From Mobula birostris (Eukaryota): a stretch of DNA of 64,000 bases. Position numbers and translations under genes: made by a program. Below the pieces are notes generated by a model. It did not search any database. It was not told the DNA's origin and saw only the letters and a list, made by a program, of their open reading frames with translations. The stretch is from assembly GCF_030028105.1 (NCBI RefSeq), contig NC_092382.1:100456699-100520698 (forward strand). The letters run 5' to 3'. This document shows, piece by piece, positions 10,079 through 60,566 of this stretch (within the stretch, counting starts at the first letter, position 1; every line of letters begins with the position of its first letter).

Positions 10079-10106
10079 TTTTTTTGTGTGACGGTCTAAC
10101 ACCGTG
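10079..10106 (-). promoter_or_regulatory. 5' D recombination signal sequence (12-bp spacer)
   Basis: Read on the minus strand: CACGGTG + 12 nt + ACAAAAAAA. Confidence 0.9.
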
Positions 10107-10119
10107 GGAACAGCGGGGG
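10107..10119 (+). other. TRBD: T-cell receptor beta diversity (D) segment GGAACAGCGGGGG
   Basis: Flanked 5' by nonamer TTTTTTTGT (10079-87), 12-nt spacer and heptamer CACCGTG (10100-06). Flanked 3' by heptamer CACTGTG (10120-26), 23-nt spacer and perfect nonamer ACAAAAACC (10150-58). G-rich, open in all three frames (GTAG / EQRG / NSG), and upstream of the J cluster. Confidence 0.95.
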
Positions 10120-10158
10120 CACTGTGTTACAACCAGGCGGAGGCCCCGTACAAAAACC
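10120..10158 (+). promoter_or_regulatory. 3' D recombination signal sequence (23-bp spacer)
   Basis: CACTGTG + TTACAACCAGGCGGAGGCCCCGT (23 nt) + ACAAAAACC. Confidence 0.95.
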
Positions 10159-10580
10159 TCCCACCACGCGTGAGGGAGCAAGGCCAAGCCTATAAGGTTC
10201 AGCGGAAGCAACCGCACACCCGAGGCATTGGGATGGCAGAGGACTGTGCTTCTTGGAGGAAAATCTATAAGACCGCACCCCTCCCTACACAACCCCTACC
10301 AGACAGGGTAGTGAAGAAGGGGTTTAGCACATCAGTCGGGGATCACAATACAGATGCTAGGGAGTCGTGTTGAAATGCTACGAGACGTTTCTGAGACCGC
10401 ACTTGCCGAGTTAGGGGCCATCCTGTTACCGGGAAGATGTGATTAAACTAGAGAGAGTGCAGAAAAAAAAAATAATTATCACAGGATGCCGCCTGGACAA
10501 AGTTACGAGGAGAGTTTTCACAGATGACGTTTCTATTTCCTGTAGCGCAGGGAGATGAGGGGTGCCCTGAGAGAGGGACA

Positions 10581-11510
10581 TAGTCATAGTCATACTTTAT
10601 TGATCCCGTTACAGCTGCACCATAAATAACAAATAGTAATAGAACCATAAATAGTTAAATAGTAATACATAAATTGTGCCAGGAAATTATGAAATAAGTC
10701 CAGGTCCAGCCTATTGGCTCAGGATGTCTGACCCTCCAAGGGAGGAGTTGTAAAGTTTGATGGCCACAGGCAGGAATGACTTCCTATGACGCTCTGTGTT
10801 GCATCTCGGTGGAATGAGTCTCTGGCTGAATGTACTCCTGTGCCCACCCAGTACATTATGTAGTGGATGGGAGACATTGTCCAAGATGGCATGCAACTTG
10901 GACAGCATCCTCTTTTCAGACACCACCGTCAGAGAGTCCAGTTCCATCCCCACAACATCACTGGCCTTACGAATGGGTTTGTGTTTGTGAGACAGCACAA
11001 GGCTACACGAGATTACGTACAAACAACATTAATAGCTACACTAGACTACAGACCTTCCACGGGACTCGCATTAGGGCAGGGCGGTGCAATAATTAATGAA
11101 CCTGACAATAAGGCACAGGGGAGGACAAATTACAATATAACAATAAATGATGTAGACGTCAGTCTGGACTCTGGGTATTGAGGAGTCTGATGGCTTCGGG
11201 GAAGAAACTGTTACACAGTCTGGACGTGAGAGCCGGAGGAGGGAGAAGGGTTTGTGTGAGGGGTGCGTGGGGGTCCTTCATAATGCTGTTTCCTTTGCGG
11301 ATGCAGCGTGCGGTGTATATGTCCGTAACGGCGGGAAGAGAGACCCCCGATGATCTTCTCAGCTGACCTCACTATCCCCTGCAGGGGTCTTGCGATCCGA
11401 GACGCTGCAATTCCCCAACCGGGCCGTGATGCAGCTGCTCAGGATGCTCTCTGCAGAACGTGGTGAGGGTGCGGTGTGGGAGGTGGACTTTTCGCAGCCT
11501 TGGGAGCATT
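10581..11510 (-). mobile_element. Two Rex1/Babar-type LINE 3' fragments
   Basis: LHAILDNVSHPLH...FLPVAIKLYN; AATAAA + (TGACTA)n tail at 10581; second subfamily at 11090-11510. Confidence 0.8.
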
Positions 11511-12218
11511 TGACGGGTAGTGGAGGCTTATCCTCATTACCAGCCTCCGGGTTACAGCATCCTTAAATAACTTTATGCCTAGATGTCTCTAAACAAGCTA
11601 ACCCTCCCTCGCACTTTCCTCGCCGTCGCCTGTCCCTGACACCGAAGTCAATATGGAGTTTGTTGCCGGACGCACGAGTCGGCTGGCCGCGCATGCGCAA
11701 GGAACAACTTACCTGTAGCACTAGTGACGCACAATTATTGCGGGACAGAACACACCCTCGTGCAAAGCGGTCACGGTGACGTTGTACCGAGGGGTGGGGG
11801 TGGGTGGGAGGGGGATGATTCGGGTCGGTCCCAGGAGAGGATGGTTGAAGGGAAGTCGCTAATCCTGAACCTTGGTGCTGTGGGGGGGGGGGGGGGGGGC
11901 TTCGGGCTTCTGTACCTCCTGCCCGCTGGGAGATGCGGGAAGAATCCACGGCCCGGATGGTGAGGTGTGTTTGATTCTGGATGTGGACTACTTGAAGCAG
12001 AACCTCCTCTGCCTACGACCGATGGTGGGAGGGAATGTGCCCATTTTATGAGGGGGGGTTTTGGGGAGGAAGCAGAAGAGGGTCACCAGGATGCCGCCTG
12101 GATTAGAGGGCATGAGCTATGGGGAGGGGTTGGATAAACTTGGCTGGTTTTCTCCGGAGCGGCCCTCGAAAGGCGAGCGAGGCCAGGGTCGGTTTTGTCA
12201 CGGAGACAGAGCGCTGTG

Positions 12219-12268
12219 TAATGACAGAGAAGCCTACTTCGGCAGCGGGACCAAACTGGTTGTCCTCG
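12219..12268 (+). CDS. TRBJ: TRB joining segment J#1 (NDREAYFGSGTKLVVL)
   Basis: FGXG motif; RSS GGTTTTGTC-12-CGCTGTG (12191-12218); donor G|GTGAGT. Confidence 0.95.
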
Positions 12269-13000
12269 GTGAGTGGATGCACGGCCGGCGCCGAGTCTGT
12301 CTGACTCGGAGCGGGGCGGGTCGGGCGGGGATCGAATTCGGGCTAAGAGGCACGCTTCGGCGTGTCCCCGCGGTCGGAGGTTGGAGGGGTAGGGGTTGGC
12401 GAAGGAAGGTCGCCGTTCTCTGGGATCAAGAGAGAGTACGAGACAGCGAGGGTAGAGGATGGGAGAGGGAGGGAGAGAGGTGGTTTTGGACGGGGGGGGA
12501 GAGGAAGATTTAGAGAAGAAAAGAAAGGGGAATGAGAATAAGGGGGGCGAGAGCAGGGGAGTTAGAGAATGGGAGAAGGAGCAAAGAAGGGAAGCGGGAG
12601 ACGAGAAAAGGGGAGGGAAAGTATAAAGGGAGGGAAGGGAAGGAGAGAAATTCAGAGCATGGGATAGAAAGGTGCGGGGAGACAGTGATTCGGAGGAGGG
12701 AGAGGGATATTGCTGGATGAGACGGGTGTTTTGGGGAAGAGATGGCTCGTGGGCGAAAGGGGAGAATGGGGGAAGGGGACGAAAGATAGAGAGGGGGAGA
12801 GAGAAATGGAAGAGTGGGAACGAGAGGGAAGAGGGAGAGGTGGGACGAAATAGTGAGGGGAAGAGGAGGGGGCGAGGGAAAGGAGAGGAGAGAGGAGTCT
12901 GGGCGACAGAGAGAGGAAAGAGAGATGGGGAAAAGTGTGAGAGAACAGGGAGGAAGAGCGAGACGAAGGGATGGAGAGAATGTGGGAGCGGGAGAGACTG

Positions 13001-13070
13001 GGCTGGTTAAAATAGATAAGGGACGTGTCGACAGACCAGGGGATAGAGGTTCGGCCTTGGTCTGAGTTCC
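13001..13070 (+). pseudogene. Relic of a J unit (pre-RSS flank and nonamer only), cut off by a CR1 fragment
   Basis: GGGCTGGTTAAAATAGATAAG...GGCCTTGGTCTGAG aligns with the flank of the 16.2-kb relic and with the J2/J5 RSS flanks; no heptamer or J coding sequence remains. Confidence 0.4.
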
Positions 13071-13074
13071 AGTT

Positions 13075-13600
13075 CAGGTGGGACATGGTAGAGTCTGTAA
13101 GATGCTGAGGCCTTGCAGAGGGGGCAGGAGACGCTCACCGGGATGCTGCCTGGGTTGGAGGGCGTGTGCCAACACGAGAGGCAGGGTGAACTTGGGTTGT
13201 TTTCTCCGGAGCGCCGGAGGCCGAGGGGAGATCTGAGAGAGGTTTATAAGATGATGAGAGACATAGATAGACTGGTAAGAGAGTATCTGTTTCCCAGGGT
13301 TGGAACGTCTAATACCAGAGGGCAAGCATTGAAGGTGGGAAGGGGATTGTGAGGGATACGTTTTTGACTCAGGGAGTCGTGGGGTGCCTGGAATGCGCTC
13401 CCTGGGGTGGTGGTGGAGGTAAATACATCGGAGGCTTTGAAGAGTCGTTTGGATAGGCAGGTGGATGTGAGGAAGTTGGAGGGATATGGACAGGGTGTAG
13501 GCGGGAGGGACTAGTGTTTGGGTGTTCTTGATCTGCTTTTAGCTGGACCAGCACAACATTGTGGGCCGAACGGCCTTTTCCTCCACTGCCCGATTCTGTG
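13075..13600 (+). mobile_element. Decayed CR1 3' end
   Basis: GMLPGLEG...RGDLREVYKMMR motif. Confidence 0.75.
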
Positions 13601-13703
13601 TTCAGTGCTCTATATGCTACATGGCCTGATCAAAACAGACAGTAGACAATGGGGTGTATCCCACAGAGCATTGTGCACCCAAGGGTGTAGAGCGTCGGCC
13701 TTT

Positions 13704-14667
13704 TAGAACATACAATAGTACAGCACAGTGCAGGCCCTTCGGCCCACATTGTTGTTCCGACCCTCAAACCCTGCCTCCCATATAAACCCCAACCTTAAAT
13801 TCCTCCATATACCTGTCTAGCAGTCTCTTAAACTTCACTAGTGTATCTGCCTCCACCACTGACTCAGGCAGTGCATTCCACGCACCAACCACTCTCTGAG
13901 TAAAAAACCCTCCTCTAATATCTCCCTTGAACTTCCCACCCCTTACCTTAAAGCCATGTCCTCTTGTACTGAGCAGTGGTACCCTGGGGAAGAGGCGCTG
14001 GCTATCCACTCTATCTATTCCTCTTATTATCTTGTACACCTCTATCATATCTCCTCTCATCGTCCTTCTCTCCAAAGAGTAAAGCCCTAGCTCCCTTAAT
14101 CTCTGATCATAATCCATACTCTCTAAACCAGGCAGCATCCTGGTAAATCTCCTCAGTACCCTTTCCAATGCTTCCACACCCTTCCTATAGTGAGGTGACC
14201 AGAACTGGACACAGTACTCCAAGTGTGGCCTAACCAGAGTTTTATAGAGCTGCATCATTACCTCGCGACTCTTAAACTCTATCCCTCCACTTATGAAAGA
14301 TAACACCTTTCTGACTACCCTATCCACCTGTGAGGCAACTTTCAGGGATCTGTGGACATGTACCCCCAGATCCCTCTGCTGTTCCACGCTACCAAATATC
14401 CTGCCATTTACTTTGTACTCCGCTTTGGACTTTGTCCTTCCAAAGTGTACAAACTCACACCTCTCCGGGTTGAACTCTATCTGCCACTTCTCAGCCCACT
14501 TCTGCATCCTATCAATGTCTCTCTCTGCAATCTTTGACAATCCTCTACACTATCTGCAACACCACCAACCTTTGTGTCGTCTGCAAACTTGCCAACCCAC
14601 CCTTCTACCCCCACATCCAGGTCGTTAATAAAAATCACGAAAAGCAGAGGTTCCAGAACCGATCCAG
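13704..14667 (-). mobile_element. 5'-truncated CR1 LINE
   Basis: ORF 13764-14540 (258 aa) is the CR1 ORF2 C-terminus; tail at 13704. Confidence 0.95.
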
Positions 14668-14689
14668 ATCTTTTCTGGAGTCCCGCCTC

Positions 14690-14885: not shown

Positions 14886-14937
14886 AGGCAGGTTCAGGGG
14901 GCCAGGCCTAGTTTTGAGACAGCCCCGAGCTGGTGTG

Positions 14938-14987
14938 TAACACTGCTGAAGCTTACTTCGGAGACGGGACAAAACTAGTCGTTTTAG
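14938..14987 (+). CDS. TRBJ: TRB joining segment J#2 (NTAEAYFGDGTKLVVL)
   Basis: FGXG; RSS AGTTTTGAG-12-TGGTGTG (14910-14937); donor G|GTAAGC. Confidence 0.95.
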
Positions 14988-15181: not shown

Positions 15182-15213
<32 letters not shown>

Positions 15214-19251: not shown

Positions 19252-20366
19252 GATAGAACATAGAACAGTACAGCACAGTACAGGCCCTTCGACCCACAAT
19301 GTTGTGCCGACCCTCAAACCCTGCCTCCCATATAAACCCCCACCTTAAATTCCTCCATATACCTGTCTAGTAGTCTCTTAAACTTCACTAGTGTATCTGC
19401 CTCCACCATTGACTCAGGCAGTGTATTCCACGCACCAACCACTCTCTGAGTAAAAAACCTTCCTCTAATATCCCCCTTGAACTTCCCACCCCTTACCTTA
19501 AAGCCATGTCCTCTTGTATTGAGCAGTGGTGCCCTGGGGAAGAGGCGCTGGCTATCCACTCTACCTATTCCTTTATTATCTTGTACACCTCTATCACGTC
19601 TCCTCTCATCCTCCTTCTCTCCAAAGAGAAAAGCCCCTAGCTCCCTTAATCTCTGATCATAATGCATACTTTCTAAAACAGGCAGTATCCTGGTAAATCT
19701 CCTCTGTACTCTTTCCAATGCTTCCACATCCTTCCTATAGTGAGGCGACCAGAACTGGACACAGTACTCCAAGTGTGGCCTAACCAGAGTTTTATAGAGC
19801 TGCATCATGACATCGCGACTCTTAAACTCTATCCCTCGACTTATGAAAGCTAACACCCCATAAGCTTTCTTAACTACCCTATCCACCTGTGAGGCAACTT
19901 TCAGGGATCTGTGGACATGTACCCCCAGATCCCTCTGCTCCTCCACACTACCAAGTATCCTGCCATTTACTTTGTACTCTGCCTTGGAGTTTGTCCTTCC
20001 ACAGTGTACCACCTCACAGTTCTCCGGGTTGAACTCCATCTGCCACTTCTCAGCCCACATCTGCATCCCATCAATGTCTCTCTGCAATCTTTGACAATCC
20101 TCTACACTATCTACAACACCACCAACCTTTGTGTCGTCTGCAAACTTGCCAACCCACCCTTCCACCCCCACATCCAGGTCGTTAATAAAAATCATGAAAA
20201 GTATAGGTCCCAGAATAGATCCTTGTGGGACACCACTAGTCACAATCCTCCAATCTGAATGGACTCCCTCCCTGCCTTCTGCATGCAAGCCAATTCTGAA
20301 TCCACCTGGCCAAACTTCCCTCGATCCCATGCTTTCTGACTTTCTGAATAAGCCTATCGTGTGGAA
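19252..20366 (-). mobile_element. 5'-truncated CR1 LINE
   Basis: ORF 19314-20369 (351 aa) with GVPQGS and FADD motifs; (CTATGTT)n tail. Confidence 0.95.
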
Positions 20367-21253
20367 CATTCATGTCGTTATGCATACACATAATGATGGA
20401 TCTCGTATTCAACTTTAAGATGGCAAATTATGAAAATATTAGGCAGGAGCGAGGGCCCCTTAATTGGGCAAAGCGAATTTTTGGGCAAATCCTCACGTGA
20501 CCGTCGGAGGATTATGGGAACTATACAGAGTGCAGGGCGCGTACGTTCAAGTACTCAGGAATGACTAGCTTCGATGGGGCTTCTGGGTCGGCATGGACCA
20601 GCGGGCTCTAATAGTGTCATTCCTTGCATCTGACGCTATGTCGAGTCTAGGTCTCGTTTGGGGGCCCGAAATCGGGTGGGGAGGGGAACATAGTGGGAGG
20701 TTGGTTTACTAAGTCTACAAGGGTAGTTCTCAAATGATAAGACAACTGTAATCACGGAATTAGACTACAAACAACCCCCCACCCCCACCCCGCCCCAATA
20801 GCAACGGGAACACTGAGGCAGATTAGAGAAAGGTGCGGAAAACAACACGGTTGCTATTCTCGGCGACTTCAACTCTCCCAACATAGACTTGGACCTCCCT
20901 AGTACAAGAGGTTTAGTCGGGGCAGAATTTGTCCACAGCATCCAGGAGAGTCTCTTCAGCAATTTGCATCTGGGACAACTGGAGGAGTGGTTTCTCTGGT
21001 CTGGGCGGTGGGAAATCAGTCTGGCCAGGCGACTGGGCTTCCTGTGGGGGAGCATCTAGCAAGTAGTGATCACAACTCAGTACGTTTACCAGTGGTAAGG
21101 AACAAGCATAATAATGGGCCTCATTTTCAACTTTACCAGGACAGGGTATGAGAATATAAAGCAAGCGTAAGGAAGTGTTAATTGCAATTAAGCTAAATTT
21201 TGAGCAAATCCTCACGTGACCCGTCGCGGATATTTAAGCATCGTCTGCACAGA

Positions 21254-22845: not shown

Positions 22846-23550
22846 AGGGCATGTATGCTTAAGTACCAAGGAAAGGCAAGGATGGCAGGGTCAGGGATCC
22901 TTGGGTGAGAGGGCATTCCGTATAACAGTTGGGTTTCATGGCTGCGGTTGCACAGGACGCCGGTGAGCGGCAATTCAGTTTTCGGTCCCCCTCCTGTAGG
23001 CAAGAAGTCATCAGTCTTGGAAGAATGCGGGCTAGGTTTACAAGAGGCTGCCAGGATGTTAAGGAGCTGGGATATATAAGCTAAGGATTCTATTCTTCAG
23101 AGCGCAGGGGACTGGGAGATGGTCCTTCAAAAGATATTGTGAAGCAAGAAGGAGTGCAGGGGGAGATTAACGAAGATGTTGTCGGGGCTGGAGGAACAAG
23201 GCTACGGAGAGTAGCCGGGCAGGGTGGGACATTATTTCAGAGGGGTGACCTTCCAGAGGTGTATAAGACCACGAGGAGCTCACATAGGGTGAATTCGTCC
23301 AGACTGTTACCCCCACGTTCGGGCATAGGTTTAAGGTGAGGTTCGGGGGGTTTGTGGGTGGTATTTAAACGCTAGCACATTGGATTATCTCGGATAGGGA
23401 CATCTTGGTCGGCATGGACCTGCTGGGCTACGACCATGCGGAGGGGCGGTGGGGGTGGGGGGGTGGGCTGCGAATTTGTTCGAGTCTCGCCCGAACAGAC
23501 GCAGCGGGGGAGAGCGAGGGCTGGTTTTGGAACAGGCCCCGGCCGCCGTG

Positions 23551-23600
23551 TACTGGCAGCGAGCAATATTTCGGCAGCGGGACCAAATTGGTCGTCTTAG
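23551..23600 (+). CDS. TRBJ: TRB joining segment J#3 (TGSEQYFGSGTKLVVL)
   Basis: FGXG; RSS GGTTTTGGA-12-CGCCGTG (23523-23550); donor G|GTGAGT. Confidence 0.95.
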
Positions 23601-24119
23601 GTGAGTCGGCTGTTTTCTGGTGCTGAGTCCATTTGACTCGGAGGGGAGGTGGGGGGTGGTAGTGGGACAAACAAGCGGGGTAGAACTCTCCCCAGGGAGA
23701 GAAGCGGGGAGACGCGAGAGGTCTCCTGTGAGGGAGAGGGACGGGAAAACAGAGAGCAACAGTGGAGAACAGAAGAGGGGGAAGAGAGATGGGTACAGAC
23801 AAGAAGGGGGTGATATGGAGGGGAAAGGCATAGAGACTGAGAGGAGGGGAGAAGCGGAAGAGAGAAGGAATGGGAGAGAGGAAAGGGAGGAAAAGAGGGA
23901 AGACAGGGGAAAGGAGACAAAACGGAAGGATAAAGAGAGAGAGAAAGTGTAGAAATGAGCGATAAAGGTGGAGAAATGAGGGCGGGTGGGATAGAGAGCC
24001 TGCTTCCATGTTGTATCAGTCCACGGCTCTCCGTGGAGGGAGTTGGCGGATTTAGCCCAGTCTCGGCTGAGAGAGAGAGACAGCGAGGGCTGGTTTTGAA
24101 ACGGGCCCCGGCCGCTGTG

Positions 24120-24169
24120 TACTAACGCTGAGCAGTATTTCGGCGGCGGGACCAAGCTGGTTGTATTAG
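24120..24169 (+). CDS. TRBJ: TRB joining segment J#4 (TNAEQYFGGGTKLVVL)
   Basis: FGXG; RSS GGTTTTGAA-12-CGCTGTG (24092-24119); donor G|GTGAGT; clear paralogue of J#3. Confidence 0.95.
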
Positions 24170-24928
24170 GTGAGTCGGCTGATTTCTGGACTCGGGGCGA
24201 CAGGTGGGCAGAGATTTCAGGGCGGGAAGTAACCCCCGAGTTATTCCCACAGCGGGGTTGGGGGTGGGGAATGGGGGCTGGATGGAGTTTGAGAGAGGGG
24301 GCACGGGAGAACTCCCCCTGAGAGAAAGAGAAAGAAGAGAGATTTTATTTTCCCGGCAGAGAAAGATCAACAACGGGAGAGGGGAAGGTGAGAGGAGAGC
24401 GAGAACGAGGGGGAAACGGGAGACAGGAGAGGTAGAAGGAAAAATTGGGAGGAGTGGAAGAGAAGGGTTGGCCTGACGGGAATGGGAGAGAGGGGAGAGA
24501 GGAAAGAAGGGGAGAAGAGAGGTGGCAGGGCAAACAGACAGGTGCAGTGGGGGATGAGAAGGGAGAGGGGACAGGGGAGAGAAAGGGGAAGCGGGAGTCT
24601 GAGGGGGAGATGGGGAAGAGAAAGGTGTGAGAGACCAGGAACTCGAAGTGAGAGAGAGAAATAGAAGGGGGAGCGAATTGGAGATAGAGTAAAAAGTGCA
24701 TCTGAAGGGTGTCAGAGGGCAGGGAGGGTAAAACGAGAGCGGGAAAGACGCGGGGAATAGGGAAGACGGGGTGAAAGGGGCTGGAGAGGATGGAGGAAGA
24801 AAGAGCGGGAGAGGGAGATATACTGTTGAAAACAGAGTCATTGTCGATAGGGAAGGGATGCTCCGACAGGTGCACAGACAGAAGGTTAGAGGCCAGGGTT
24901 TGTTTAGAGACAGCCCCGAACCGGTGTG

Positions 24929-24978
24929 TAGTTACAACGAAGCCTACTTCGGCGACGGGACAAAACTGGTCGTTTTAG
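24929..24978 (+). CDS. TRBJ: TRB joining segment J#5 (SYNEAYFGDGTKLVVL)
   Basis: FGXG; RSS TGTTTAGAG-12-CGGTGTG (24901-24928); donor G|GTAAGC. Confidence 0.95.
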
Positions 24979-25295
24979 GTAAGCGGCGGCGTGTGTCTAG
25001 CGGGGCAGAGTGAGACAAGGGAAGAGACAGTGAGATGGAGGGGGAGAGACGGCAAGGGAGATGAAAGTCAGGAGAGGGAGACGACGGGACAGCAGAGAGT
25101 GTTAGGCAGAACAAGGATACATGAGAGTGACAGGGAGAGACAGACAGAGAGAGAGAGAGATTTGTCTGGCGAAAATAGGTTCATTGTGTGCAGAGAACGG
25201 GTGCACGGACAGGGCTGGCGGAGGCAGGTGTACAGGCACAAGGCTGGAGGGTCAGGTCTTGAGGTCTTGTTTAGAGACAGCCCAGAACCGCTGTG

Positions 25296-25345
25296 TAATA
25301 CATATGAAGCCTACTTCGGCGACGGGACAAAGTTGGTCGTTCTGG
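25296..25345 (+). CDS. TRBJ: TRB joining segment J#6 (NTYEAYFGDGTKLVVL)
   Basis: FGXG; RSS TGTTTAGAG-12-CGCTGTG (25268-25295); donor G|GTAAGT. Confidence 0.95.
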
Positions 25346-25439: not shown

Positions 25440-26790
25440 CGTGAGGGAGGAGAGGAAGAGGAGGCCAGACAGAAAGAGAGGGTGTGGGAGTGACAGAGAG
25501 AGGGGTGCTAGAAGGGGAAAAGGGGGGGACGGCGAGGCGACGAGGGGCAGGAGGGGAGTGAGTTAAGGGTGCAGAGGGGAGGGGGAAGGGAGTCAGGGTC
25601 GGAGGGAAATGAGCAAGAAAGTGCGATGGGAGAAGAGCAAGAGACGGCGGAACTGAGGGAGAAGGGACGAGAGAGAGAGCGGGTTGATGGGAATAGACCG
25701 TGGAGGGGAGCTGTGCCGCCGGGGCTGCCGGTGACGTGTGCGCGGACATCAGTTTAGAGGCCAGGGTTTGTTTCGAGACGGCCCCGAATCTGCGGGTAAT
25801 GTTACCGAAGCCTGCTTCGGTGACCCTCAGTCGTTCTGGGTCGGAGAGTTCCCCTCTTCCTCTGAAGTTAACTCCGAGAAGGGGGTGGGGGTGCTGGTGA
25901 TAGGGCCGCCAGATGCTTGAGGGATCGATGCGCTCCCCAGGGTCGGTTTGGGCGTCGGGAGAGGGGGGGGTCTTCTCAAGACAGAGTGTATGCGTGAGGC
26001 TGAGAGCCAGAACGTGAGAAAGAGAGAGGGGGGGGGAAAGAGAGGGGGAGAGAGTGAGGGAGAGAGAGAGAGAGAGGGGAAGAGAGGGGGGGAGAGTGAG
26101 GGAGAGAGAGAGGGAGAGACGGGAGAGAAAGAGAGGGAAAGAGAGGGGGAGAGAGGGGGAGCGAGATAGAGACATAAATAGATAAACAGAAAGGCAGAGA
26201 GATTGCAGGGGAGAGAGAGACAGACAAACAGGTAGGTACATAAACAGAGAGGGGGAGAGAGTGAGGGAGAAAGAGAGAGGCAGAGAGGTAGAGAGCGAGG
26301 AAGGGGGGGAAATAGACAGGGAGACCGATAGAAGGATAAACAGAGAGAGGAGGGTGGACATATAAAGATAGAGAGAGGTAGATAGCGAGAAGGGGAAAGA
26401 GAGAGATAGAGAAGTGGACAGACAGAGAGACGCAGAGAGTGGGGGAGCTAGGAGAGAGGCAGACAATGAGAATGAGACAAGCAGAGCTGCAGACGGTGAG
26501 TGAGAGGGAGAAAGAGAATGTGACAGATGAAGGGATGATAGAGAGAGAGAGAGACACGGAGAAATAGGATTAGGGGGAGAGAGAGAGAAAGAGAGAGACA
26601 AAGAGGTCAAGGGGGGCATACGGGGGAAGGGAGACAGACAGACAGCCGAAGGCAGAGAGGGATAGACAGAGCGGGAAAATAAACAGAGAGAGGACAGAGA
26701 GTGGCAAATGAAGACGTGCAGAGGGAAAGGCAGAAATGGAAGGATGTAGGAGAGAGTGCACGCGAGGAGGGATTGAGAGAGGCAGAGAGC
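25440..26790 (+). repeat. Polypurine (GA-rich) low-complexity tract, the largest of several next to J segments
   Basis: Near-exclusive A/G on the + strand. Similar tracts at ~12440-13000, 15120-15560, 15890-16120, 23640-24000, 24280-24830, 25000-25160 and 28050-28300. Confidence 0.9.
25797..25839 (+). pseudogene. TRBJ: TRBJ pseudogene (NVTEACFGD then frameshift)
   Basis: Flank nearly identical to J#5. Heptamer mutated to CTGCGGG (essential GTG lost), net 7-nt deletion removing GTK, weak donor GTCGGA. Confidence 0.85.
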
Positions 26791-32124: not shown

Positions 32125-33647
32125 GGAGAGAATGTGGAGAGGGTGTTTCCTATGGTGGGGGAGTCTAGCACCAGAGGACACAGATAGAGTGGAAGTGCAG
32201 AGGATGTTTCCTATGGTGGGGGAGTCTAGGACCAGAGGACACAAATAGAGTGGACGTGGAGAGGATGTATCCTGTAGTTGGGGAGTCTAGGACCAGAGGA
32301 CACAGATAGAGTGGATGTGGAGAGGATGTTTCCTGTCGTGGGGGAGTCTAGGAACAGAGGACACAGATAGAGTGGATGTGGAGAGGATGTTTCCTGTAGT
32401 TGGGGAGTCTAGGCCCAGGGGACACAGATAGAGTGGATGTGGAGAGGATGTTTCCTATAGTGGGGGAGTCTAGGACCAGAGGACACAGATAGAGTGGATG
32501 TGGAGAGGATGTTTCCTATAGTGGGGGAGTCTAGGACCAGAGGATACAGATACAGTGGATGTGGAGAGGATGTTTCCTGTCGTGGGGGAGTCTAGGAACA
32601 GAGGACACAGATAGAGGGGATGTGGAGAGGATGTTTCCTATAGTGGGGGAGTCTAGGACCAGAGGACACAGATAGAGTGGATGTGGAGAGGATGTTTCCT
32701 GTAGTGGGGGAGTCTAGGACCAGAGGACACAGATACAGTGGATGTGGAGAGGATGTTTCCTGTAGTGGGAGAGTCTCGGACCAGAGGGCACAGATAGAGT
32801 GGATGTGGAGAGGATGTTTCCTGTAGTGGGGCAGTCTAGGACCAGAGGACACAGATAGAGTGGATGTGGAGAGGATGATTCCTGTAGTGGGGCAGTCTAG
32901 GACCAGAGGACACAGATAGAGTGGATGTGGAGAGGATGTTTCCTATAGTGGGGGAGTCTAGGACCAGAGGACACAGATACAGTGGATGTGGAGAGGATGT
33001 TTCCTGTAGTGTGGGAGTCTAGGACCAGAGGACACAGATAGAGTGGATGTGGAGAGGATGTTTCCTGTCGTGGGGGAGTCTAGGAACAGAGGACACAGAT
33101 AGAGGGGATGTGGAGAGGATGTTTCCTATAGTGGGGGAGTCTAGGACCAGAGGACACAGATAGAGTGGATGTGGAGAGGATGTTTCCTGTCGTGGGGGAG
33201 TCTAGGACCAGAGGACACTGATAGAGTGGATGTGGAGAGGATGTTTCCTGTAGTTGGGGAGTCTAGGACCAGAGGACACAGATAGAGTGGATGTGGAGAG
33301 GATGTTTCCTATAGTGGGGGAGTCTAGGCCCAGAGGACTCAGATAGAGTGGATGTGGAGAGGATGTTTCCTATAGTGGGGGGAGTCTAGGACCAGAGGAC
33401 ACAGATAGAGTGGATATCGAGAGGATGTTTCCTGTAGTGAGGGGAGTCTAGGACCCGAAGGTACAGACAGAGTGGATGTGGAGAGGATGTTTCTTATAGT
33501 GGGGGAGTCTAGGACCAGAGGACACAGATAGAGTGGATGTGGAGAGGATGTTCCCTATAGTGGAGGAGTCTAGGACCAGAGGACACAGATGGAGTGGATG
33601 TGCAGAGGATGTTCCCTTTAGTGGAGGAGTCCAGGACCAGAGGACAC
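32125..33647 (+). repeat. 61-bp CR1-derived minisatellite, array 3 (~25 units)
   Basis: Same unit; entered from and exiting into colinear CR1 sequence. Confidence 0.95.
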
Positions 33648-34410: not shown

Positions 34411-34807
34411 TGAGTTTGAGAGGCGTAATAGATTAGCCTCGATGAAATGGCGGAACAGACTCGATGGGCCAAATGGCCGAATGCTGCTCCCATGTCTGAT
34501 GATCTGAGGGCCTATGCTGAAGAAGAGAGAGCGGAAAAGAGGGACAGAAAGTTGTCGGAGAAGGGTGGGTCAAGTTTACCGTCTCCCCGTCTCTTATGAA
34601 CACGAACAGCATTTAGCTGTCGAGGCTCCTAGACCCCGAGCTCTCCCAGCCCCTACCCCACCCCCACCTCGCCTCCCGACCGCGAAACGTTGCCCTCCTC
34701 GCGGGGGTTGCAACGGGCGAGAGTTGAGGTCGGACAGGGCCCAGCCCATGGCCGCGGCGAGCCCGGGGGCGCGGGGTCGTGTTCGCGTACGGCGCCTGAC
34801 GGCTGTG

Positions 34808-34857
34808 CTCCGGTAACGAAGCCTACTTCGGCAGCGGCACCAAACTGGTCGTTCTGG
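34808..34857 (+). CDS. TRBJ: TRB joining segment J#7 functional (SGNEAYFGSGTKLVVL), isolated 3'-most J
   Basis: FGXG; RSS TGTTCGCGT-12-GGCTGTG (34780-34807); donor G|GTAAGG. Confidence 0.9.
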
Positions 34858-37180: not shown

Positions 37181-37540
37181 CTTGTCAAATGCCTTGCTTG
37201 TGTTATGCTGAGAAGCTTTGGACAGGGGTGCCAGCTAATAAGGAAAGGTCCGGCAAAGTCGGGCTCTCCACCTCGGACATAGAATTACAAACGGACCACT
37301 CGGCCCGACGACTCTGCCCCGCTGTTTTACTATCCCTCTCAACACCATCCACCTGTTTTCCCCCCGTAACTTTGCGCGCCCTGCCTAATCAAGATCCTGT
37401 CAACCTCCGCTTTAAATACACCCAATGTCTTGGCCTCCACGGCCGCCTGTGGCAACGAATTCCACAGATTGTCCCACCCTCCAGCTAAAGAACTTCCTCC
37501 TCTTTTCCATTCTAAATGGGCGACCCTCTATTCTGAGGCT

Positions 37541-37860
37541 GCGCCCTCTGATTCTAGACTCCCCAACCATAGGAAGCATCCCCTCCACATCCACTCTATC
37601 TGTGCCCTATGGTCCTAGACTCCCCCACTATAGGAAACATCCTCTCCACATCCATTCTATCTGTGCCCTCTGATCCTAGACTCCACTCACTGTAGGGAAC
37701 ATCCTCTCTACATCTCCTCTGTGTCCTGAGGTCCTAGATTCTCCCCAGTACAGGGAACATCCTCTCCACATCCACTCTATCTGTGCCCTATGGTCCTAGA
37801 CTCCCCCACTACAGGAAGCATCCCCTCCACATCCACTCTATCTGTGTCCTCTAGTCCTGG
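37541..37860 (-). repeat. 61-bp CR1-derived minisatellite, array 4 (~5 units, reverse orientation)
   Basis: Reverse complement of the same unit, adjoining a minus-strand CR1 3' end (37280-37540). Confidence 0.9.
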
Positions 37861-39536: not shown

Positions 39537-41400
39537 ATAGAAACATAGAAACATAGAAAATAGGTGCAGGAGTAGGCCATTCGGCCCTTCGAGCCTGCAC
39601 CGCCATTTATTATGATCGTGGCTGATCATCCAACTCAGAACACCGCCCCAGCCTTCCCACCATACCCCCTGACCCCCGTAGCCACAAGGGCCATATCTAA
39701 CTCCCTCTTAAATATAGCCAATGAACTGGCCTCAACTGTTTCCTGTGGCAGAGAATTCCACAGATTCACCACTCTCTGTGTGAAGAAGTTTTTCCTAATC
39801 TCGGTCCTAAAAGGCTTCCCCTCTATCCTCAAACTGTGACCCCTCGTTCTGAACATCCCCAACATCGGGAACAATATTCCTGCATCTAGCCTGTCCAATC
39901 CCTTTAGGATCTTATACGTTTCAATGAGATCCCCCCTCAATCTTCTAAATTCCAACGAGTACAAGCCCAGTTCGTCCAGTCTTTCTTCATATGAAAGTCC
40001 TGCCATCCCAGGAATCAATCTGGTGAACCTTCTCTGTACTCCCTCTATGGCAAGGATGTCTTTCCTCAGATTAGGGGACCAAAACTGCACACAATACTCC
40101 AGGGGCGGTCTCACCAAGGCCTTGTACAACTGCAGTAGTACCTCCCTGCTCCTGTACTCAAATCCTCTCGCTATAAATGCCAGCATACCATTCGCCTTTT
40201 TCACCGCCTGCTGTACCTGCAAGCCCACTTTCAATGACTGGTGTATAATGACACCCAGGTCACGTTGCACCTCCCCTTTTCCTAATCGGCCACCATTCAG
40301 ATAATAATCTGTTTTCCTATTTTTGCCACCAAAGTGGATAACTTCACATTTATCCACATTAAATTGCATCTGCCATGAACTTACCCACTCACCCAACCTA
40401 TCCAAGTCACCCTGCATCCTCTTAGCATCCTCCTCACAGCTAACACTGCCACCCAGCTTCGTGTCATCCGCAAACTTGGAGATGCTGCATTTAATTCCCT
40501 CATCCAAGTCATTAATATATATTGTAAACAACTGGGGTCCCATCACTGAGCCTTGCGGTACCCCACTAGTCACTGCCTGACATTCTGAAAAGGTCCCGTT
40601 TATTCCCACTCTTTGCTTCCTGTCTGCTAACCAACTCTCCACCCACACCAATACCTTACCCCCAATACCGTGTGCTTTAAGTTTGCACACTAATCTCCTG
40701 TGTGGGACCTTGTCAAAAGCCTTCTGAAAATCCAAATATACCACATCCACTGGTTCTCCCCTATCCACTCTACTAGTTACATCCTCAAAAAATTCTATGA
40801 GATTCGTCAGACATGATTTTCCTTTCACAAATCCATGCTGACTTTGTCCGATCATTTCACCACTTTCCAAATGTGCTGTTATCACATCCTTGATAACTGA
40901 CTCCAGCAGTTTCCCCACCACCGACGTTAGGCTAACCGGTCTATAATTCCCCGGTTTCTCTCTCCCTCCTTTTTTAAAAAGTGGAGTTACATTAGCCACC
41001 CTCCAATCCTCAGGAACTAGTCCAGAATCTAACGAGTTTTGAAAAATTATCACTAATGCATCCACTATTTCTTGGGCTACTTCCTTAAGCACCCTGGGAT
41101 GCAGACCATCTGGTCCTGGGGATTTATCTGCCTTCAATCCCTTCAATTTACCTAACACCACTTCCCTACTAACATGTATTTCGCTCAGTTCCTCCATCTC
41201 ACTGGACCCTCTGTCCCCTACTATTTCTGGAAGATTATTTATGTCCTCCTTAGTGAAGACAGAACCAAAGTAATTATTCAATTGGTCTGCCATGTCCTTG
41301 CTCCCCATAATCAATTCACCTGTTTCTGTCTGCAGGGGACCTACATTTGTCTTTACCAGTCTTTTCCTTTTTACATATCTATAAAAGCTTTTACAGTCCG
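39537..41400 (-). mobile_element. Young 5'-truncated CR1 (HER1-type) LINE with uninterrupted 559-codon ORF2 (39635-41314) containing the whole RT domain
   Basis: KSPGPDG, HGFVKGKSCLTNL, LDFQKAFDKVPH, GVPQGS, FADDTKL with no stops; (CTATGTTT)n tail. Confidence 0.97.
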
Positions 41401-52915: not shown

Positions 52916-52926
52916 CTCTGTCGAAC

Positions 52927-54115
52927 CTCGGGAGTGTGTGATGGGATGGTGTGGAGGGAGATTCACTCTGTGTCTGATCCCAGGGATGTGCAATGGGACG
53001 GTGTGGAGGGAGATTCACTCTGTGTCTGACCCCGGGAGTGTGTGATGGGACGGTGTGGAGGGAGATTCACTCTGTGTGTCTGACCCCGGGAGTGTGTGAT
53101 GGGACGTTGTGGAGGGAGACTCACTCTGTGTCTGACCCCGGGAGTGTGTGATGGGACGGTGTGGAGGGAGATTCACTCTGTGTCTGACCCCGGGAGTGTG
53201 TGATGAGACGGTGTGGAAGGAGCTTCACTCTGTGTCTGACCCCGGGAGTGTGTGATGGGACGGTGTGGAGGGAGATTCACTCTGTGTCTGACCCCGGGAG
53301 TGTGTGATGGGACGGTATGGAGGGAGATTCACTTTGTGTCAGACCCCGGGAGTGTGTGATGGGACGGTGTGGAGGGAGATTCACTCCGTGTCTGACCTCG
53401 GGAGTGTGTGATGGGACGGTGTGGAGGGAGATTCACTCTGTGTCTGACCCCGGGAGTGTGTGATGAGACGGTGTGGAAGGAGCTTCACTCTGTGTCTGAC
53501 CCCGGGAGTGTGTGATGGGACGGTGTGGAGGGAGATTCACTCTGTGTCTGACCCCGGGAGTGTGTGATGAGACGGTGTGGAAGGAGCTTCACTCTGTGTC
53601 TGACCCCGGGAGTGTGTGATGGGACGGTGTGGAAGGAGCTTCACTCTGTGTCTGACCCCGGGAGTGTGTGATGGGACGGTGTGGAGGGAGATTCACTCTG
53701 TGTCTGACCCCGGGAGTGTGTGATGGGACGGTGTGGAGGGAGATTCACTCTGTGTCTGACCCCGGGAGTGTGTGATGGGACGGTATGGAGGGAGATTCAC
53801 TTTGTGTCAGACCCCGGGAGTATGTGATGGGACGGTGTGGAGGGAGATTCACTCCGTGTCTGACCTCGGGAGTGTGTGATGGGACGGTGTGGAGGGAGAT
53901 TCACTCTGTGTCTGACCTCGGGAGTGTGTGATGGGACGGTGTGGAGGGAGATTCACTCTGTGTCTGACCCCGGGAGTGTGTGATGAGACGGTGTGGAAGG
54001 AGCTTCACTCTGTGTCTGACCCCGGGAGTGTGTGATGGGACGGTGTGGAGGGAGATTCACTCTGTATGTCTGAACCCCGTGAGTGCGTGACGGGACGGTG
54101 TGGAGGGAGCTTCAC
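52927..54115 (+). repeat. 52-bp G-rich minisatellite (~23 units)
   Basis: Unit GGGAGTGTGTGATGGGACGGTGTGGAGGGAGATTCACTCTGTGTCTGACCCC, with recurring variant units. Confidence 0.97.
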
Positions 54116-55745: not shown

Positions 55746-56089
55746 TGCCTTCGAGTGTCTGTCTGAAAGCCTCTGGTAGGCCTGTGTCCAGTCAGCCACG
55801 CCGCCCACTCCCTTCCCGTGCTGGAAAATGCCAGGCAAGCGCCAGTCTCCACTGCCGACACCATATCCGTCTCCCTCTACATCCCTGCCTCGGGGCCTCT
55901 TAAAGGCCCTCTGTCGCGTCTCTCTCCACCGCCACCCCAGGCGCCACAACCCAGGCGCCCATCTCATCCCGCACACCTTTTTGAAACTGACCCCTCTCAC
56001 TTTCTCCGGTTTGCGCATTTCCACCACCAGGGGCGACTCTCGGGCGGGCAGCCGCAATCTTTCTCCCGCTAGGAGGATGTTATGAGAAT

Positions 56090-56950
56090 GTAGGGTGAAT
56101 TGGACAGGCTGGGTGAGTGGGCAGATGCAGTTTAACGTGGATAAGTGTGAGGTTATCCACTTTGGTGGTAAGAACGGGAAGGCAGATTATTATCTAAATG
56201 GAGTCAAGTTAGGAAAAGGGGAAGCACAACGAGATCTAGGTGTTCTTCTACATCAGTCACTGAAAGTAAGCATGCAGGTACAGCAGGCAGTGAAGAAAGC
56301 TAATGGCATGCTGGCCTTCATAACAAGGGGAGTTGAGTATAGGAGCAAAGAGGTCCTTCTGCAGTTGTACAGGACCCTGGTGAGACCACACCTGGAGTAC
56401 TGTGTGCAGTTTTGGTCTCCAAATTTGAGGAAGGACATTCTTGCTATTGAGGGAGTGCAGCGTCGGTTCATGAGGTTAATTCCCGGGATGGCGGGACTGT
56501 CATATGTCGAAAAATTGGAGCGGCTGGGCTTGTATACTCTGGAATTTAGAGGGATGAGAGGGGATCTTATTGAAACATATAAGATTATTAAGGGATTGGA
56601 CACGCTGGAGGCAGGAAGCATGTTCCCGCTGATGTGTGAGTCCAGAACCAGAGCCCACAGTTTCAGGATAAGGGGTAGGCCATTTAGAACGGAGTTGAGG
56701 AAAAACTTTTTCACCCAGAGAGTGGTGGATCTGTGGAATGCTCTGCCCCAGAAGGCTGTGGAGGCCAAGTCTCTGGATGCTTTCAAGAAAGAGATGGATA
56801 GAGATCTTAAAGATAGCGGAATCAAAGGTTATGGGGATAAGGTAGGAACTGGATACTGATAGTGGATGACGAGCCATGGTCACAGTGAATGGTGGTGCTG
56901 GCTCGAAGGGCCAAATGGCCTACTCCTGCACCTATTGTCTGTTGTCTATT
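56090..56950 (+). mobile_element. 5'-truncated CR1 (HER1-type) LINE
   Basis: ORF 56095-56859 (254 aa). Confidence 0.95.
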
Positions 56951-57514
56951 GTCTAGGGCGGGGAACCTAAAACTAGAGGGGACAGCTTCTGGGTGAGAGG
57001 TTTCATTGGGGCCCAGAGGGCGGTCTGTCTGTGGAAGGAGCTGCCGGAGGAACAACACACGGACAAGGACACGGACAGGAAACGGGACAATCTCCGGTGG
57101 AGGGGGATTGGTCTGCCTGGTCCATTTGCGTCACGGTCTGATCTGGCAATTCTCAATATCGTGCACCCCCATCAAACACAGGTCCACAAGTCCCAGTAAA
57201 TTGCCTCTGCACTCTTTCAATCCTGTCGACATCTCTCCCATGGGGAGATGACGAGACCTGCCCGTCATTCTCCAGATTGGACCTGGCCAATATCTTACAC
57301 AGCTTCTACATGACGTCCCGACCCTGTACCCAACACTTCCATGTGCTAGGACCTCTCTTTACGACCCGACCTACCTGTGATGCCACTCTCAAGGAATTAT
57401 GGGTCTGCCTTCCCAGAAGCCTCTGCTCCTACCGCGCCCCTCAGTACCCTCCTGCCCAGCGAGTAAATCCTGCCCTAGTATGTCCTCCTAAAGTGCATGA
57501 GCTCTGGGAACGTG

Positions 57515-57960
57515 GAACATAGAAATCGACAGCACATTACAGGCCCTTCGGCCCACAACGTTGTGCTGACCATGCAACCGACTCGAGAAACTGCCTAGAA
57601 ATTCCCCACCGCATGGCCCTCTATTTTTCTGCGCTCCATATCTAATAATCTCTTAAAAGACCCTATCGTATCCGCCTCCACCACCGTCGCCGGCAGCCCA
57701 TTCCACACCCTCAGCACTCTCTGTGTGAAAAACCTACCCCAGACATCTCTGTACCTACTCCCTAGCACCTTAAAACTGTGTCCCCTCGTGTCAGCCATTT
57801 CAGCCCCGGGGAAAATCCACACGTCAACGCCCCTCGTTATCCTATACACCTCGATCAGGTCGCCTCTCACCCTCCGTCGCTCCAGGGAGAAAAGGCCGAG
57901 TTCGCTCAACCTATTCTCATAAGGCATGCTCCCCCAATCCAGGCAACATCCTTGTAAATC
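57515..57960 (-). mobile_element. CR1 3' fragment
   Basis: MPYENRLSELGLFSLERRR, same subfamily as 36043-37180. Confidence 0.85.
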
Positions 57961-58715
57961 TCAAACAACAGGAATTCTGCAGATGCTAGAAATTCAAGCA
58001 ACACGCATCAAAGTTGCTGGTGAACGCAGCAGGCCAGGCAGCATCTCTAGGAAGAGGTACAGTCGACGTTTCAGGCCGAGACCCTTCGTCAGGTCTAACT
58101 GAAGGAAGAGTGAGTAAGAGATTTGAACGTGGGAGGGGGAGGGGGAGATCCAAAATGATAGGAGAAGACAGGAGGGGGAGGGATGGAGCCAAGAGCTGGA
58201 CAGGTGATTGGCAAAGGGGATATGAGAGGATCATGGGACAGGAGGTCCGGGGAGAAAGACAAGGGGGGGGGGGGAACCCAGAGGATGGGCAAAGGGTATA
58301 GTCAGAGGGACAGAGGGAGAAAAAGGAGAGTGAGAGGAAGAATGTGTGTATAAAAATAAGTAACAGATGGGGTACGAGGGGGAGGTGGGGTATTAGTGGA
58401 AGTTAGAGAAGTCAATGTTCATGCCATCAGGTTGGAGGCTACCCAGACGGAATATAAGGTGTTGTTCCTCCAACCTGAGCGTGGCTTCATCTTTACAGTA
58501 GAGCAGGCCGTGGATAGACATGTCAGAATGGGAGTGGGATGTGGAACTAAAATGTGTGGCCACTGGGAGATCCTGCTTTCTCTGGCGGACAGAGCGTAGG
58601 TGTTCAGCAAAGCGGTCTCCCAGTCTGCGTCGGGTCTCGCCAATATATAGAAGGCCACATCGGGAGCACCGGACGCAGTATATCACCCCAGCCGACTCAC
58701 AGGTGAAGTGCGTCC
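57961..58715 (-). mobile_element. Penelope-like retroelement, 3' part with GIY-YIG endonuclease
   Basis: VIYCVRCSRCGLLYIGETRRRLGDRFAEHL...PVATHF...LEEQHLIFRLGSLQPDGMN (ORF 58393-58785). Confidence 0.93.
58060..58098 (-). ncRNA. Minimal type I hammerhead ribozyme motif of the Penelope terminal repeat
   Basis: Minus strand: uuagac-CUGACGA-AGG(GUCUCGG)CCU-GAAAC-GUC-gacug; catalytic core intact, palindromic ACGU helix III, one mismatch in helix I. Confidence 0.75.
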
Positions 58716-58929
58716 GGTGCTCCCGATGTGGCCTTCTATATGTTGGCCACACTGTCAACATTAACAACACTGTGAACCTGCACAACAGCTATGAGTGTCC
58801 CATGGACGTGGGCCCCAAGATCTCTCACATATGTATTTAAAACACAGTTGAGTTTACGAAGGGCAAACAAAACTCCCTTCACGATGCTGTCAACTTGTGA
58901 AGCCGCTTTAAATGGACTCTCATTCCTCA

Positions 58930-60170
58930 ATGTAATGATACAGCTCTATAAAACTCTGGTTAGGCCACACTTGGAGTACTGTGTCCAGTTCTGGTTGCCT
59001 CGCTATAGTCATAGTCATAGTCATACTTTATTGATCCCGGAGGAAATTGGTTATCGTTATAGTTGCACCATAAATAATTAAATAGTAATAAAAACCATAA
59101 ATAGTTAAATAGTAATATGTAAATTATGCCAGGAAATAAGTCCAGGACCAGCCTATTGGCTCAGGGTGTCTGACCCTCCAAGGGAGGAGTTGTAAAGTTT
59201 GATGGCCACAGGCAGGAATGACTTCCTATGACGCTCAGTGCTGCATCTCGGTGGAATGAGTCTCTGGCTGAATGTACTCCTGTGCCCACCCAGTACATTA
59301 TGTAGTGGATGGGAGACATTGTCTAAGATGGCATGCAACTTGGACAGTATCTTGTTTTCAGACACCACCGTCAGAGAGGTCCAGTTCCATCCCCAAAACA
59401 TCACTGGCCTTACGAATGAGTTTACTGATTCTGTTGGTGTCTGCTACCCTCAGCCTGCTGTCCCAGCACACAACAGCAAATATGATCGCACCAGCAAATA
59501 TGATCGCACTGGCCACCACAGACTCGTAGAACATTCTCAGCATCGTCCGGCAGATGTTAAAGGACCTCAGTCTCCTTGTGAAATAGAGACGGCTCTGACC
59601 CTTCTTGTAGACAGCTTCAGTGTTCTTTGACCAGCCCAGTTTATTGTCAATTCGTATCCCCAGATATTTGTAATCTTCCACCATAGGAAGGATGTGGAAG
59701 CATTGGAAAGGATACAAAGGAGATTTACCAGGATGCTGCCTGGTTTAGAGAGTATGCATTATGATCAGAGATTAAAGGAGCTAGGGCTTTACTCTTTGGA
59801 GAGAAGGAGGATGAGAGGAGACATGATAGAGGTGTACAAGATAATAAGAGGAATAGATAGAGTGGATAGCCAGCGCCTCTTCCCCAGGGCACCACTGCTC
59901 AATACAAGAGGACATGGCTTTAAGGTAAGGGGTGGGAAGTTCAAGGGGGATATTAGAGGAGGGTGTTTTACTCAGAGAGTGGTTGGTGCGTGGAATGCCC
60001 TGCCTGAGTCAGTGGTGGAGGCAGATACACTAGTGAAGTTTAAGAGACTACTAACAGGTATATGGAGGAATTTAAGGTGGGGGTTTATATGGGAGGCAGG
60101 GTTTGAGGGCCGGCACAATATTGTGGGCTGAAGGGCCTGCAATGTGCTGTACTATTCTATGTTCTATGTT
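58930..60170 (+). mobile_element. CR1 3' region interrupted by a Rex1 element (59005-59675, minus strand)
   Basis: [18 protein letters not shown] | Rex insert | [13 protein letters not shown]...; tail ends at 60170. Confidence 0.9.
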
Positions 60171-60215
60171 CAACTCCATTTACCCTTCTCTCTCTCTCTC
60201 TGTCTCTCCCCAAAG

Positions 60216-60566
60216 ATCCCAAGAAAGACATCCGAGATCCCAAGGTGACCCTCTTCCAGCCGCCGCAGAAGGAGCTGAGGGAGAAAGGGAAAGCCACCTT
60301 GGTCTGCCTCATCACTGACTTCTACCCGGACAACCTCCGCATCCAATGGCTCCAGGGCGACTTTGTAATCCCGCCCAACGACACCCGGGTGCTGACCGAT
60401 GCGGAGTCGTCGAGCAATGCGGACAGGAGCGCCTTCAGCACCAGCAGCCAGCTGATCCTCGACGCGTTGGATTACGCCACGAGTAACAGGGTAGTGTGCC
60501 GCGCGGCTCACTACCAGAAAGGGTTCGACCCAAAGATGTACCAGGCAGAGGTCCGCGTCAAGCGAG
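60216..60566 (+). CDS. TRBC: T-cell receptor beta constant region, exon 1 (C1-set Ig domain)
   Basis: Polypyrimidine tract + AG (60214-15); 351-nt phase-1/phase-1 exon in frame with every intact J. Translates DPKKDIRDPKVTLFQPPQKELREKGKATLVCLITDFYPDNLRIQW...SSQL...VVCRAAHY...EVRVKR with both Ig cysteines and the W. Donor G|GTGAGC. Confidence 0.93.

Follow-up and report, generated by a model that had tools for sequence, protein, structure and literature searches.

A retroelement-inflated germline D-J-C region of a probable T cell receptor beta locus in Mobula birostris

A stretch of 64,000 nucleotides (nt) from Mobula birostris (contig NC_092382.1, positions 100,456,699 to 100,520,698 of the forward strand; hereafter 'the window') carries widely scattered short segments that resemble the diversity (D), joining (J) and constant (C) elements of an antigen receptor, and thus raises the question of which receptor these segments would encode and how such a locus is laid out in the germline. 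The analysis described below indicates, with high confidence, that the window contains the 3' part of the unrearranged germline D-J-C region of one of two ray T cell receptor (TCR) beta translocons, and that this region is functional. That reading draws upon the sequence anatomy of the segments, their family assignment, an exon structure based on homology, contig coverage limited to the first exon of the C gene, and repeat content. The locus is of an ordinary kind, with an unusual layout.

The D-beta segment within the window and its two recombination signal sequences (RSSs; Table 1) represent the sole match to such an RSS pair on either strand of the surrounding 314 kilobases (kb), and 20 shuffled sequences returned no match. 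When the D pattern was searched across the entire genome, two exact matches were found on this contig, one of which was the window D. The core of that segment is similar to the vertebrate D-beta motif, GGGACAGGGGG. Approximately 50 nt 5' of its 12-RSS, the interval 10030-10060 contains a GC box together with an E-box (CACGTG) that is followed by CACGTC; the germline promoters of mammalian D-beta segments are located at the corresponding position. A pattern search for the E-box motif at this spacing matched the window D alone, and not the D located farther upstream.

Downstream of the window D are seven intact J segments of 50 nt each, all of which encode YFGxGTKLVVL. Each is accompanied by a heptamer that ends in GTG and by a T-rich nonamer located 11-13 nt away, and a single additional base separates each from its GT donor, which corresponds to splice phase 1. 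A search of the whole 4.0-gigabase genome with a 33-position J pattern produced 14 exact matches, all on this contig, and the reversed-pattern control produced none; when two mismatches were allowed, four additional J segments on this contig and three scattered matches were recovered, and the control gave matches similar to the latter. An additional pseudo-J, overlooked in the first-pass annotation of this DNA, was identified with a profile of nine J segments; a small deletion has removed its FGxG motif, its heptamer is degenerate and its donor is poor.

The first exon of the C gene, an open frame with intact splice signals, encodes an immunoglobulin (Ig) domain of the C1-set family (Pfam, E 1.7e-12). 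Because the J donors are of phase 1 and the exon is of phase 1-1, all seven J segments read into it in frame, across introns that extend from 25,358 base pairs (bp) for the last J to 47,947 bp for the first. These lengths agree with the first-pass annotation, whose further statements, that the D lies 2.1 kb from the first J and 24.7 kb from the last, that the C exon is in frame with every J, and that all of the parts reside on the + strand, were likewise confirmed.

The identity of the receptor was addressed by comparing the protein encoded by the C exon with 1.84 billion representative proteins. The strong single-domain matches (no more than about 300 amino acids (aa) in length) were all derived from cartilaginous fishes, including sawfish, nurse shark, horn shark, little skate, elephant fish and others, were all named or built like TCR beta, and displayed 34-45% identity to the exon. 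The closest of these relatives were TCR beta chains at 40-45% identity, among them a sawfish protein (XP_051865295, 43%) and a cDNA-derived nurse shark protein (ADW95896, 40%). In a maximum-likelihood tree that did not include C domains of TCR gamma, delta or alpha, the exon fell within the TCR beta clade, from which Ig lambda sequences split off with support of 100/99; inside that clade it grouped with the same sawfish protein and a skate sequence, with supports of 82/71 and 85/83. The best single-domain relatives and the tree placement thus uphold the original assignment to a cartilaginous-fish TCR beta, and the C exon did not prove closer to TCR delta, TCR gamma or an Ig class. No near-identical protein was recovered by a word-indexed protein search, using either the exon alone or the exon within its 171-aa open frame, which fits the suggestion that the region is possibly unannotated in the collections searched.

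The C gene continues well beyond the 3' end of the window, where three additional exons were located on the basis of homology (Table 1); the cluster had been described as complete, a description that the window by itself does not bear out. The hinge exon, which encodes DGCALSN (compare DRCALTN in sawfish) and includes the interchain cysteine, possesses a strong polypyrimidine tract as well as the donor GTAAGT, and ranked first by far in splice-signal score among 67 candidate micro-exons. The transmembrane exon contains the conserved lysine (..LLICKSVL..) and displays 58-60% identity to sawfish TCR beta. The entire gene consists of four exons of 351, 21, 107 and 27 nt and spans 15 kb; those exon sizes are very close to the 387, 18, 107 and 18 nt of mammalian TRBC.

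Evidence that this gene is transcribed was obtained from four small public sequencing runs (X1-X4), all from one study and one organism, the contigs of which were aligned to positions 58001-64000. A 601-nt stretch that is 58% exon has 39-69% of its words represented in these runs, and in X1 the depth is approximately 1100 over exon 1, as compared with approximately 10 or 0 in the adjoining unique intron. Contigs from all four runs cover exon 1 without mismatch, and their alignments end at the donor, at 60566. Positions 121-470 of a 930-nt contig from X2 correspond to 60217-60566 with zero mismatches, leaving 120 letters on the 5' side and 460 on the 3' side; a 789-nt contig from X3 carries the identical 460-letter extension past 60566, and a 358-nt contig from X4 bears 84 letters ahead of exon 1. 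The extensions past 60566 are absent from the next 3.4 kb of the genome, and the 460-letter extension corresponds to exons 2-4 (21+107+27 = 155 nt) and 305 nt of 3' untranslated region, ending in a (GA)n run. Since the contig alignments end exactly at the exon-1 donor and the length of the extension fits exons 2-4, the coverage points to spliced mRNA. Among the rows listed for these runs, no loose-end row was present at the borders of exon 1. For the first J in the window (12219-12268), one of three sampled 31-mers was present in X1, which is weak evidence for its use. A separate X1 contig, with a depth of approximately 10, spans 60537-61141 and crosses the exon-1 donor into the intron, a pattern that fits either pre-mRNA prior to splicing or a small amount of DNA in the run.

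The organization of the locus on its 5' side was examined using pattern matches and an additional 20 kb of upstream sequence. The first-pass annotation had described one D and seven J segments; both descriptions hold within the window, and both fail as totals, in that two additional D-beta segments and three additional intact J segments are located upstream on the same strand. Both upstream D segments possess the heptamers CACCGTG and CACTGTG found at the window D, as well as a related 23-nt spacer that begins with TTACA. A search by tblastn for a C remnant in the interval from the upstream J segments to the window D produced only noise (E > 1). The resulting order is D(-42.2 kb)-J-D(-20.2 kb)-J-J-D(10.1 kb)-J7(+1 pseudo-J)-C, extending across approximately 117 kb, in which three D-J modules (with one, two and seven J segments, respectively) share a single C.

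The same contig also harbors a second cluster, inverted and located 245 kb downstream, with eight J segments and a divergent C exon; the earlier description of a single D-J-C cluster is therefore no longer tenable. Its J segments are positioned 10-19 kb 5' of their C exon, leaving a J-C intron of approximately 10 kb, and its C domain is placed, with support of 96/95, alongside another sawfish TCR beta (XP_051865301), to which it is 49% identical. Because the two C domains each group with a different sawfish protein, the sequences point to a duplication of C that would be older than the split between the lineage of this ray and that of sawfish. At least 115 V-beta-like exons (variable, V) are distributed across the contig between 98.21 and 101.08 megabases (Mb), in blocks on the + strand (99.39-100.25 Mb) and on the minus strand (100.89-101.04 Mb and 98.21-98.46 Mb); the + strand block is located 0.2-1.1 Mb 5' of the window cluster, and one minus-strand block lies past the second cluster. 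No V-beta was found by tblastn from -20 kb to +294 kb. The overall arrangement looks like two convergent TCR beta translocons. Several pairs of V-beta-like exons display equal scores in opposite orientation, as might suggest an inverted segmental duplication.

Table 1. Segments, exons and repeats of the + strand cluster, and the principal parts of the second cluster. Unprefixed positions are window coordinates, and those prefixed C17 are positions on the contig that carries the window.
Feature	Position	Strand	Description
D-beta	C17:100414521-100414600 (~-42.2 kb)	+	core GGGACAGGGGGGGA, canonical G-rich; nonamer GCTTTTTGT at 12 nt
J, intact	C17:100426237 (-30.5 kb)	+	pattern match
D-beta	C17:100436457-100436517 (~-20.2 kb)	+	atypical 16-nt core, weaker nonamer
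J, intact	-14184..-14132 (-14.2 kb)	+	pattern match and upstream 20 kb
J, intact	-4224..-4175 (-4.2 kb)	+	pattern match and upstream 20 kb
LINE-type reverse-transcriptase ORF fragment, 5' of D	2522..3190	+	223 aa; Pfam RVT_1 E 1e-21
D-beta, third of the + strand cluster, both RSSs	10079..10158	+	sequence read directly
D 12-RSS	10079-10106		nonamer 10079-10087 TTTTTTTGT, T-rich; 12-nt spacer; heptamer 10100-10106 CACCGTG
D core	10107-10119		13 nt, G-rich, GGAACAGCGGGGG
D 23-RSS	10120-10158		heptamer 10120-10126 CACTGTG; 23-nt spacer; nonamer 10150-10158, perfect, ACAAAAACC
J, first in window, fourth of cluster	12190..12268 (coding 12219-12268)	+	NDREAYFGSGTKLVVL; donor GTGAGT
J, RSS and coding	14911..14987 (coding 14938-14987)	+	NTAEAYFGDGTKLVVL; donor GTAAGC
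LINE-type reverse-transcriptase ORF fragment, between second and third J of window	19317..20369	-	351 aa; Pfam RVT_1 E 3e-10
J, RSS and coding	23523..23600 (coding 23551-23600)	+	TGSEQYFGSGTKLVVL; donor GTGAGT
J, RSS and coding	24092..24169 (coding 24120-24169)	+	TNAEQYFGGGTKLVVL; donor GTGAGT
J, RSS and coding	24902..24978 (coding 24929-24978)	+	SYNEAYFGDGTKLVVL; donor GTAAGC
J, RSS and coding	25269..25345 (coding 25296-25345)	+	NTYEAYFGDGTKLVVL; donor GTAAGT
Pseudo-J	25770..25841	+	nhmmer, profile of nine J segments, E 3e-5
61-bp minisatellite array	32132..33647		24.8 copies; Tandem Repeats Finder
J, last, weak nonamer	34780..34857 (coding 34808-34857)	+	SGNEAYFGSGTKLVVL; donor GTAAGG
Longest open LINE-type reverse-transcriptase ORF, in J-C intron	39638..41314	-	559 aa; Pfam RVT_1 E 4e-33
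52-bp minisatellite array, in J-C intron	52925..54115		22.8 copies; Tandem Repeats Finder
TRBC exon 1, Ig C1-set domain	60216-60566	+	351 nt, phase 1-1; AG acceptor, GT donor, open frame
TRBC exon 2, hinge	L012:4869-4889 (4.9 kb past window end)	+	21 nt; homology and splice signals
TRBC exon 3, transmembrane	L012:8518-8624 (8.5 kb past window end)	+	107 nt; homology and splice signals
TRBC exon 4, tail	L013:1126-1152 (11.1 kb past window end)	+	27 nt; TSHSKRFD, then stop
Second-cluster C1-set exon	C17:100762376-100762705 (L003:1497-1841)	-	37% identical to window C
Second-cluster J segments (n=8), within 9 kb	C17:100772941-100781910	-	pattern matches
LINE, long interspersed element; ORF, open reading frame.

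In developing T cells, the RAG recombinase would be expected to join a D-beta, via its 23-RSS, to the 12-RSS of a J located downstream, after which a V-beta (with an inferred 23-RSS) would be joined to the 12-RSS of that D; the joining order, and the actual use of each D and J, are likewise inferred. The primary transcript would then be spliced from the phase-1 donor of the chosen J to the acceptor at 60216, and onward through the hinge exon (providing the interchain cysteine) and the transmembrane exon (providing the lysine) to the tail exon, which ends in SHSKRFD. A broader proposal, that the convergent translocons represent two old and strongly diverged ray TCR beta isotypes, one of which has an interleaved D-J-D-J-J-D-J7 array that, under the 12/23 rule, would permit D-to-D joins and a graded choice among the J segments for its single C, and that the two could serve functionally distinct alpha-beta T cells, is tentative, and is regarded as doubtful at present.

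Several points weigh against the assignment of the window to a functional TCR beta region. The C exon is at most 40-45% identical to any named TCR beta, and its grouping with the sawfish and skate sequences is only modestly supported (82/71 and 85/83). The RNA nature of runs X1-X4 is a guess; no read joining a named J to 60216 was seen, the contig letters 5' of exon 1 were not read, and the support for J use amounts to one 31-mer. In addition, the low-complexity interval 60177-60216 was masked during read mapping, such that the acceptor was placed by sequence and not by reads, and the DNA flanking the upstream D and J segments was read via pattern matches and not as full sequence.

The first of the competing explanations holds that the + strand cluster is a decaying and little-used copy, and that the compact inverted cluster performs most of the TCR beta function. 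The second C is indeed closer to known sequences than is the window C, the J region of the second cluster is approximately six times denser, and the window cluster contains the pseudo-J and some weak nonamers. Against these features, none of the seven J segments of the window, its D or the four C exons is disrupted, their splice sites are good, exon 1 is deeply covered in four runs by contigs that end at its donor, and the (weak) grouping of a sawfish counterpart with the window C suggests that this type of C has been retained; a decaying copy is accordingly judged to be quite improbable.

A second explanation, that artefacts of assembly account in part for the unusual layout (the D-J modules interleaved with no C of their own, the introns of great length and the second, inverted cluster), is suggested by the highly repetitive nature of the region (about 80% of 314 kb) and by three gaps of undetermined bases (N) located downstream, at window coordinates 87.3, 142.6 and 228.9 kb. 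However, no N is present in the window or from -20 kb to +87 kb, the D and J copies all differ in sequence and therefore do not correspond to collapsed or duplicated reads, and the two C genes share only 37% identity; such an origin is highly improbable.

That the window instead belongs to TCR delta (which likewise possesses D segments with 12/23 RSSs), to TCR gamma or to an Ig lambda-like light chain (the FGxGTKL and KATLVCL motifs of which resemble those of the window J and C) is exceedingly improbable, even though Ig constant domains score level with TCR beta in a PDB sequence search with the C exon (38-47 bits for kappa and lambda C, as compared with 47 for a TCR beta chain) and one shark relative has been automatically named 'kappa light chain-like': the best single-domain relatives, from sharks, rays and a chimaera, are all TCR beta, and include the experimentally derived nurse shark chain; lambda sequences stand apart in the tree; more than 100 V-beta-like exons flank the locus; and light chains and TCR gamma are excluded because a D segment is present (both lack one) and because the window C, in place of terminating within its own exon as a light-chain C does, continues into hinge, lysine-bearing transmembrane and KRFD-tail exons that are typical of shark TCR beta.

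When the three reverse-transcriptase (RT) reading frames listed in Table 1, the longest of which had exclusively RVT_1 clusters as its Atlas neighbours, were used as probes, 42 RT-like blocks were found in the window, in both orientations, comprising 36% of its length and 45% of the intron between the seventh J and C. Most of these blocks correspond to the C-terminal part of RT alone, that is, to the 5'-truncation that is typical of LINEs. At least 65% of the window was found to be repeated in a self-comparison within the surrounding 314 kb, and approximately 17 kb of the interval from the D to C exon 1 is non-repeated. Five minisatellite arrays, identified in the window with Tandem Repeats Finder, contribute approximately 4.7 kb in sum, and no tRNA-like heads of short interspersed elements were found by ARAGORN. 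The D-J-C region is thus stretched approximately tenfold, mainly by truncated LINE insertions and minisatellites, and the attribution of the inflated spacing to retroelements in the first-pass annotation is supported; since the surrounding 314 kb is 80% repeat, that inflation is a property of the genome at large and is not specific to the locus. The 61-bp unit of the array at 32132-33647 recurs at 876-1528, at 8742-9787 and, reverse-complemented, at 37539-37858, and these four separate arrays resemble members of a family of dispersed repeats.

Loci of this kind are known from the TRB of mammals (PMC2806336) and teleosts (PMC8656973), of which the ray layout is a variant. As in the ray, the mammalian D possesses a 5' 12-RSS, a 3' 23-RSS and a G-rich core of the GGGACAG type; the mammalian clusters (TRBD1-TRBJ1-TRBC1 and TRBD2-TRBJ2-TRBC2) each contain six or seven J segments, in all of which a 12-RSS, an FGxG motif and a phase-1 donor are found; and mammalian TRBC likewise comprises four exons, encoding an Ig domain, a hinge of approximately 20 nt with a cysteine, a 107-nt transmembrane segment with a lysine, and a short tail. 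A V library located upstream, as in most mammals (PMC2806336), is also shared with the ray. Unlike mammalian TRB, however, the ray locus places three D-J modules, uninterrupted by any other C, ahead of one C; its cluster spans approximately 117 kb, as compared with a few kb in mammals, and its C gene 15 kb, as compared with approximately 1.5 kb; and its second cluster is inverted and convergent, with a C that is 37% identical to the first, whereas the mammalian clusters are in tandem and their C genes are nearly identical.

Comparison with the TCR beta chains of other cartilaginous fishes (nurse shark ADW95896, sawfish XP_051865295 and XP_051865301, and little skate XP_055517541) revealed common C-domain motifs, a hinge containing CAL or CG, a transmembrane segment of the form LTYL..CKS and a C-terminus of SKRFD. 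While the TCR genes of these fishes have been reviewed as being in translocon arrangement (PMC6795676), the literature searched yielded no published map of the germline D-J-C region of any ray. The TRB locus of channel catfish, which contains one TRBD, 31 TRBJ and two TRBC in 214 kb (PMC8656973), resembles that of the ray in possessing many J segments per C and two differing C genes, but its D is single and its C genes are arranged in tandem, where the ray has several D segments interleaved with J and convergent clusters. Similarly, the duplicated TRB locus 'TRE' of squamates (PMC11754216) constitutes an additional TRB-like locus, the C of which is divergent; that duplication is specific to the lizard and snake lineage, whereas the two C types of the ray are located 245 kb apart on one contig and are apparently shared with sawfish.

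A layout in which several D-J modules share one C and are accompanied by a second, convergent cluster whose C is very different is not described in the papers searched. Germline TCR maps serve as the reference for repertoire studies, and cartilaginous fishes are, among living lineages, the oldest in which V(D)J recombination occurs; the exact coordinates of D, J and C segments, which gene predictors miss, are supplied here for such use. The structure of the locus further implies that RAG targeting and splicing would tolerate introns of 25-48 kb filled with LINE fragments and, if both types of C are in use, rays would provide a natural setting in which to examine differences in pairing or signalling between divergent C-beta domains. 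Beyond this contig, three D-like elements with the order heptamer-D-heptamer-23-nonamer were observed at C12:20251525, 25339414 and 30330677; the contig on which they reside also carries dozens of C1-set exons, and they are probably D segments of an Ig heavy-chain or TCR delta region.

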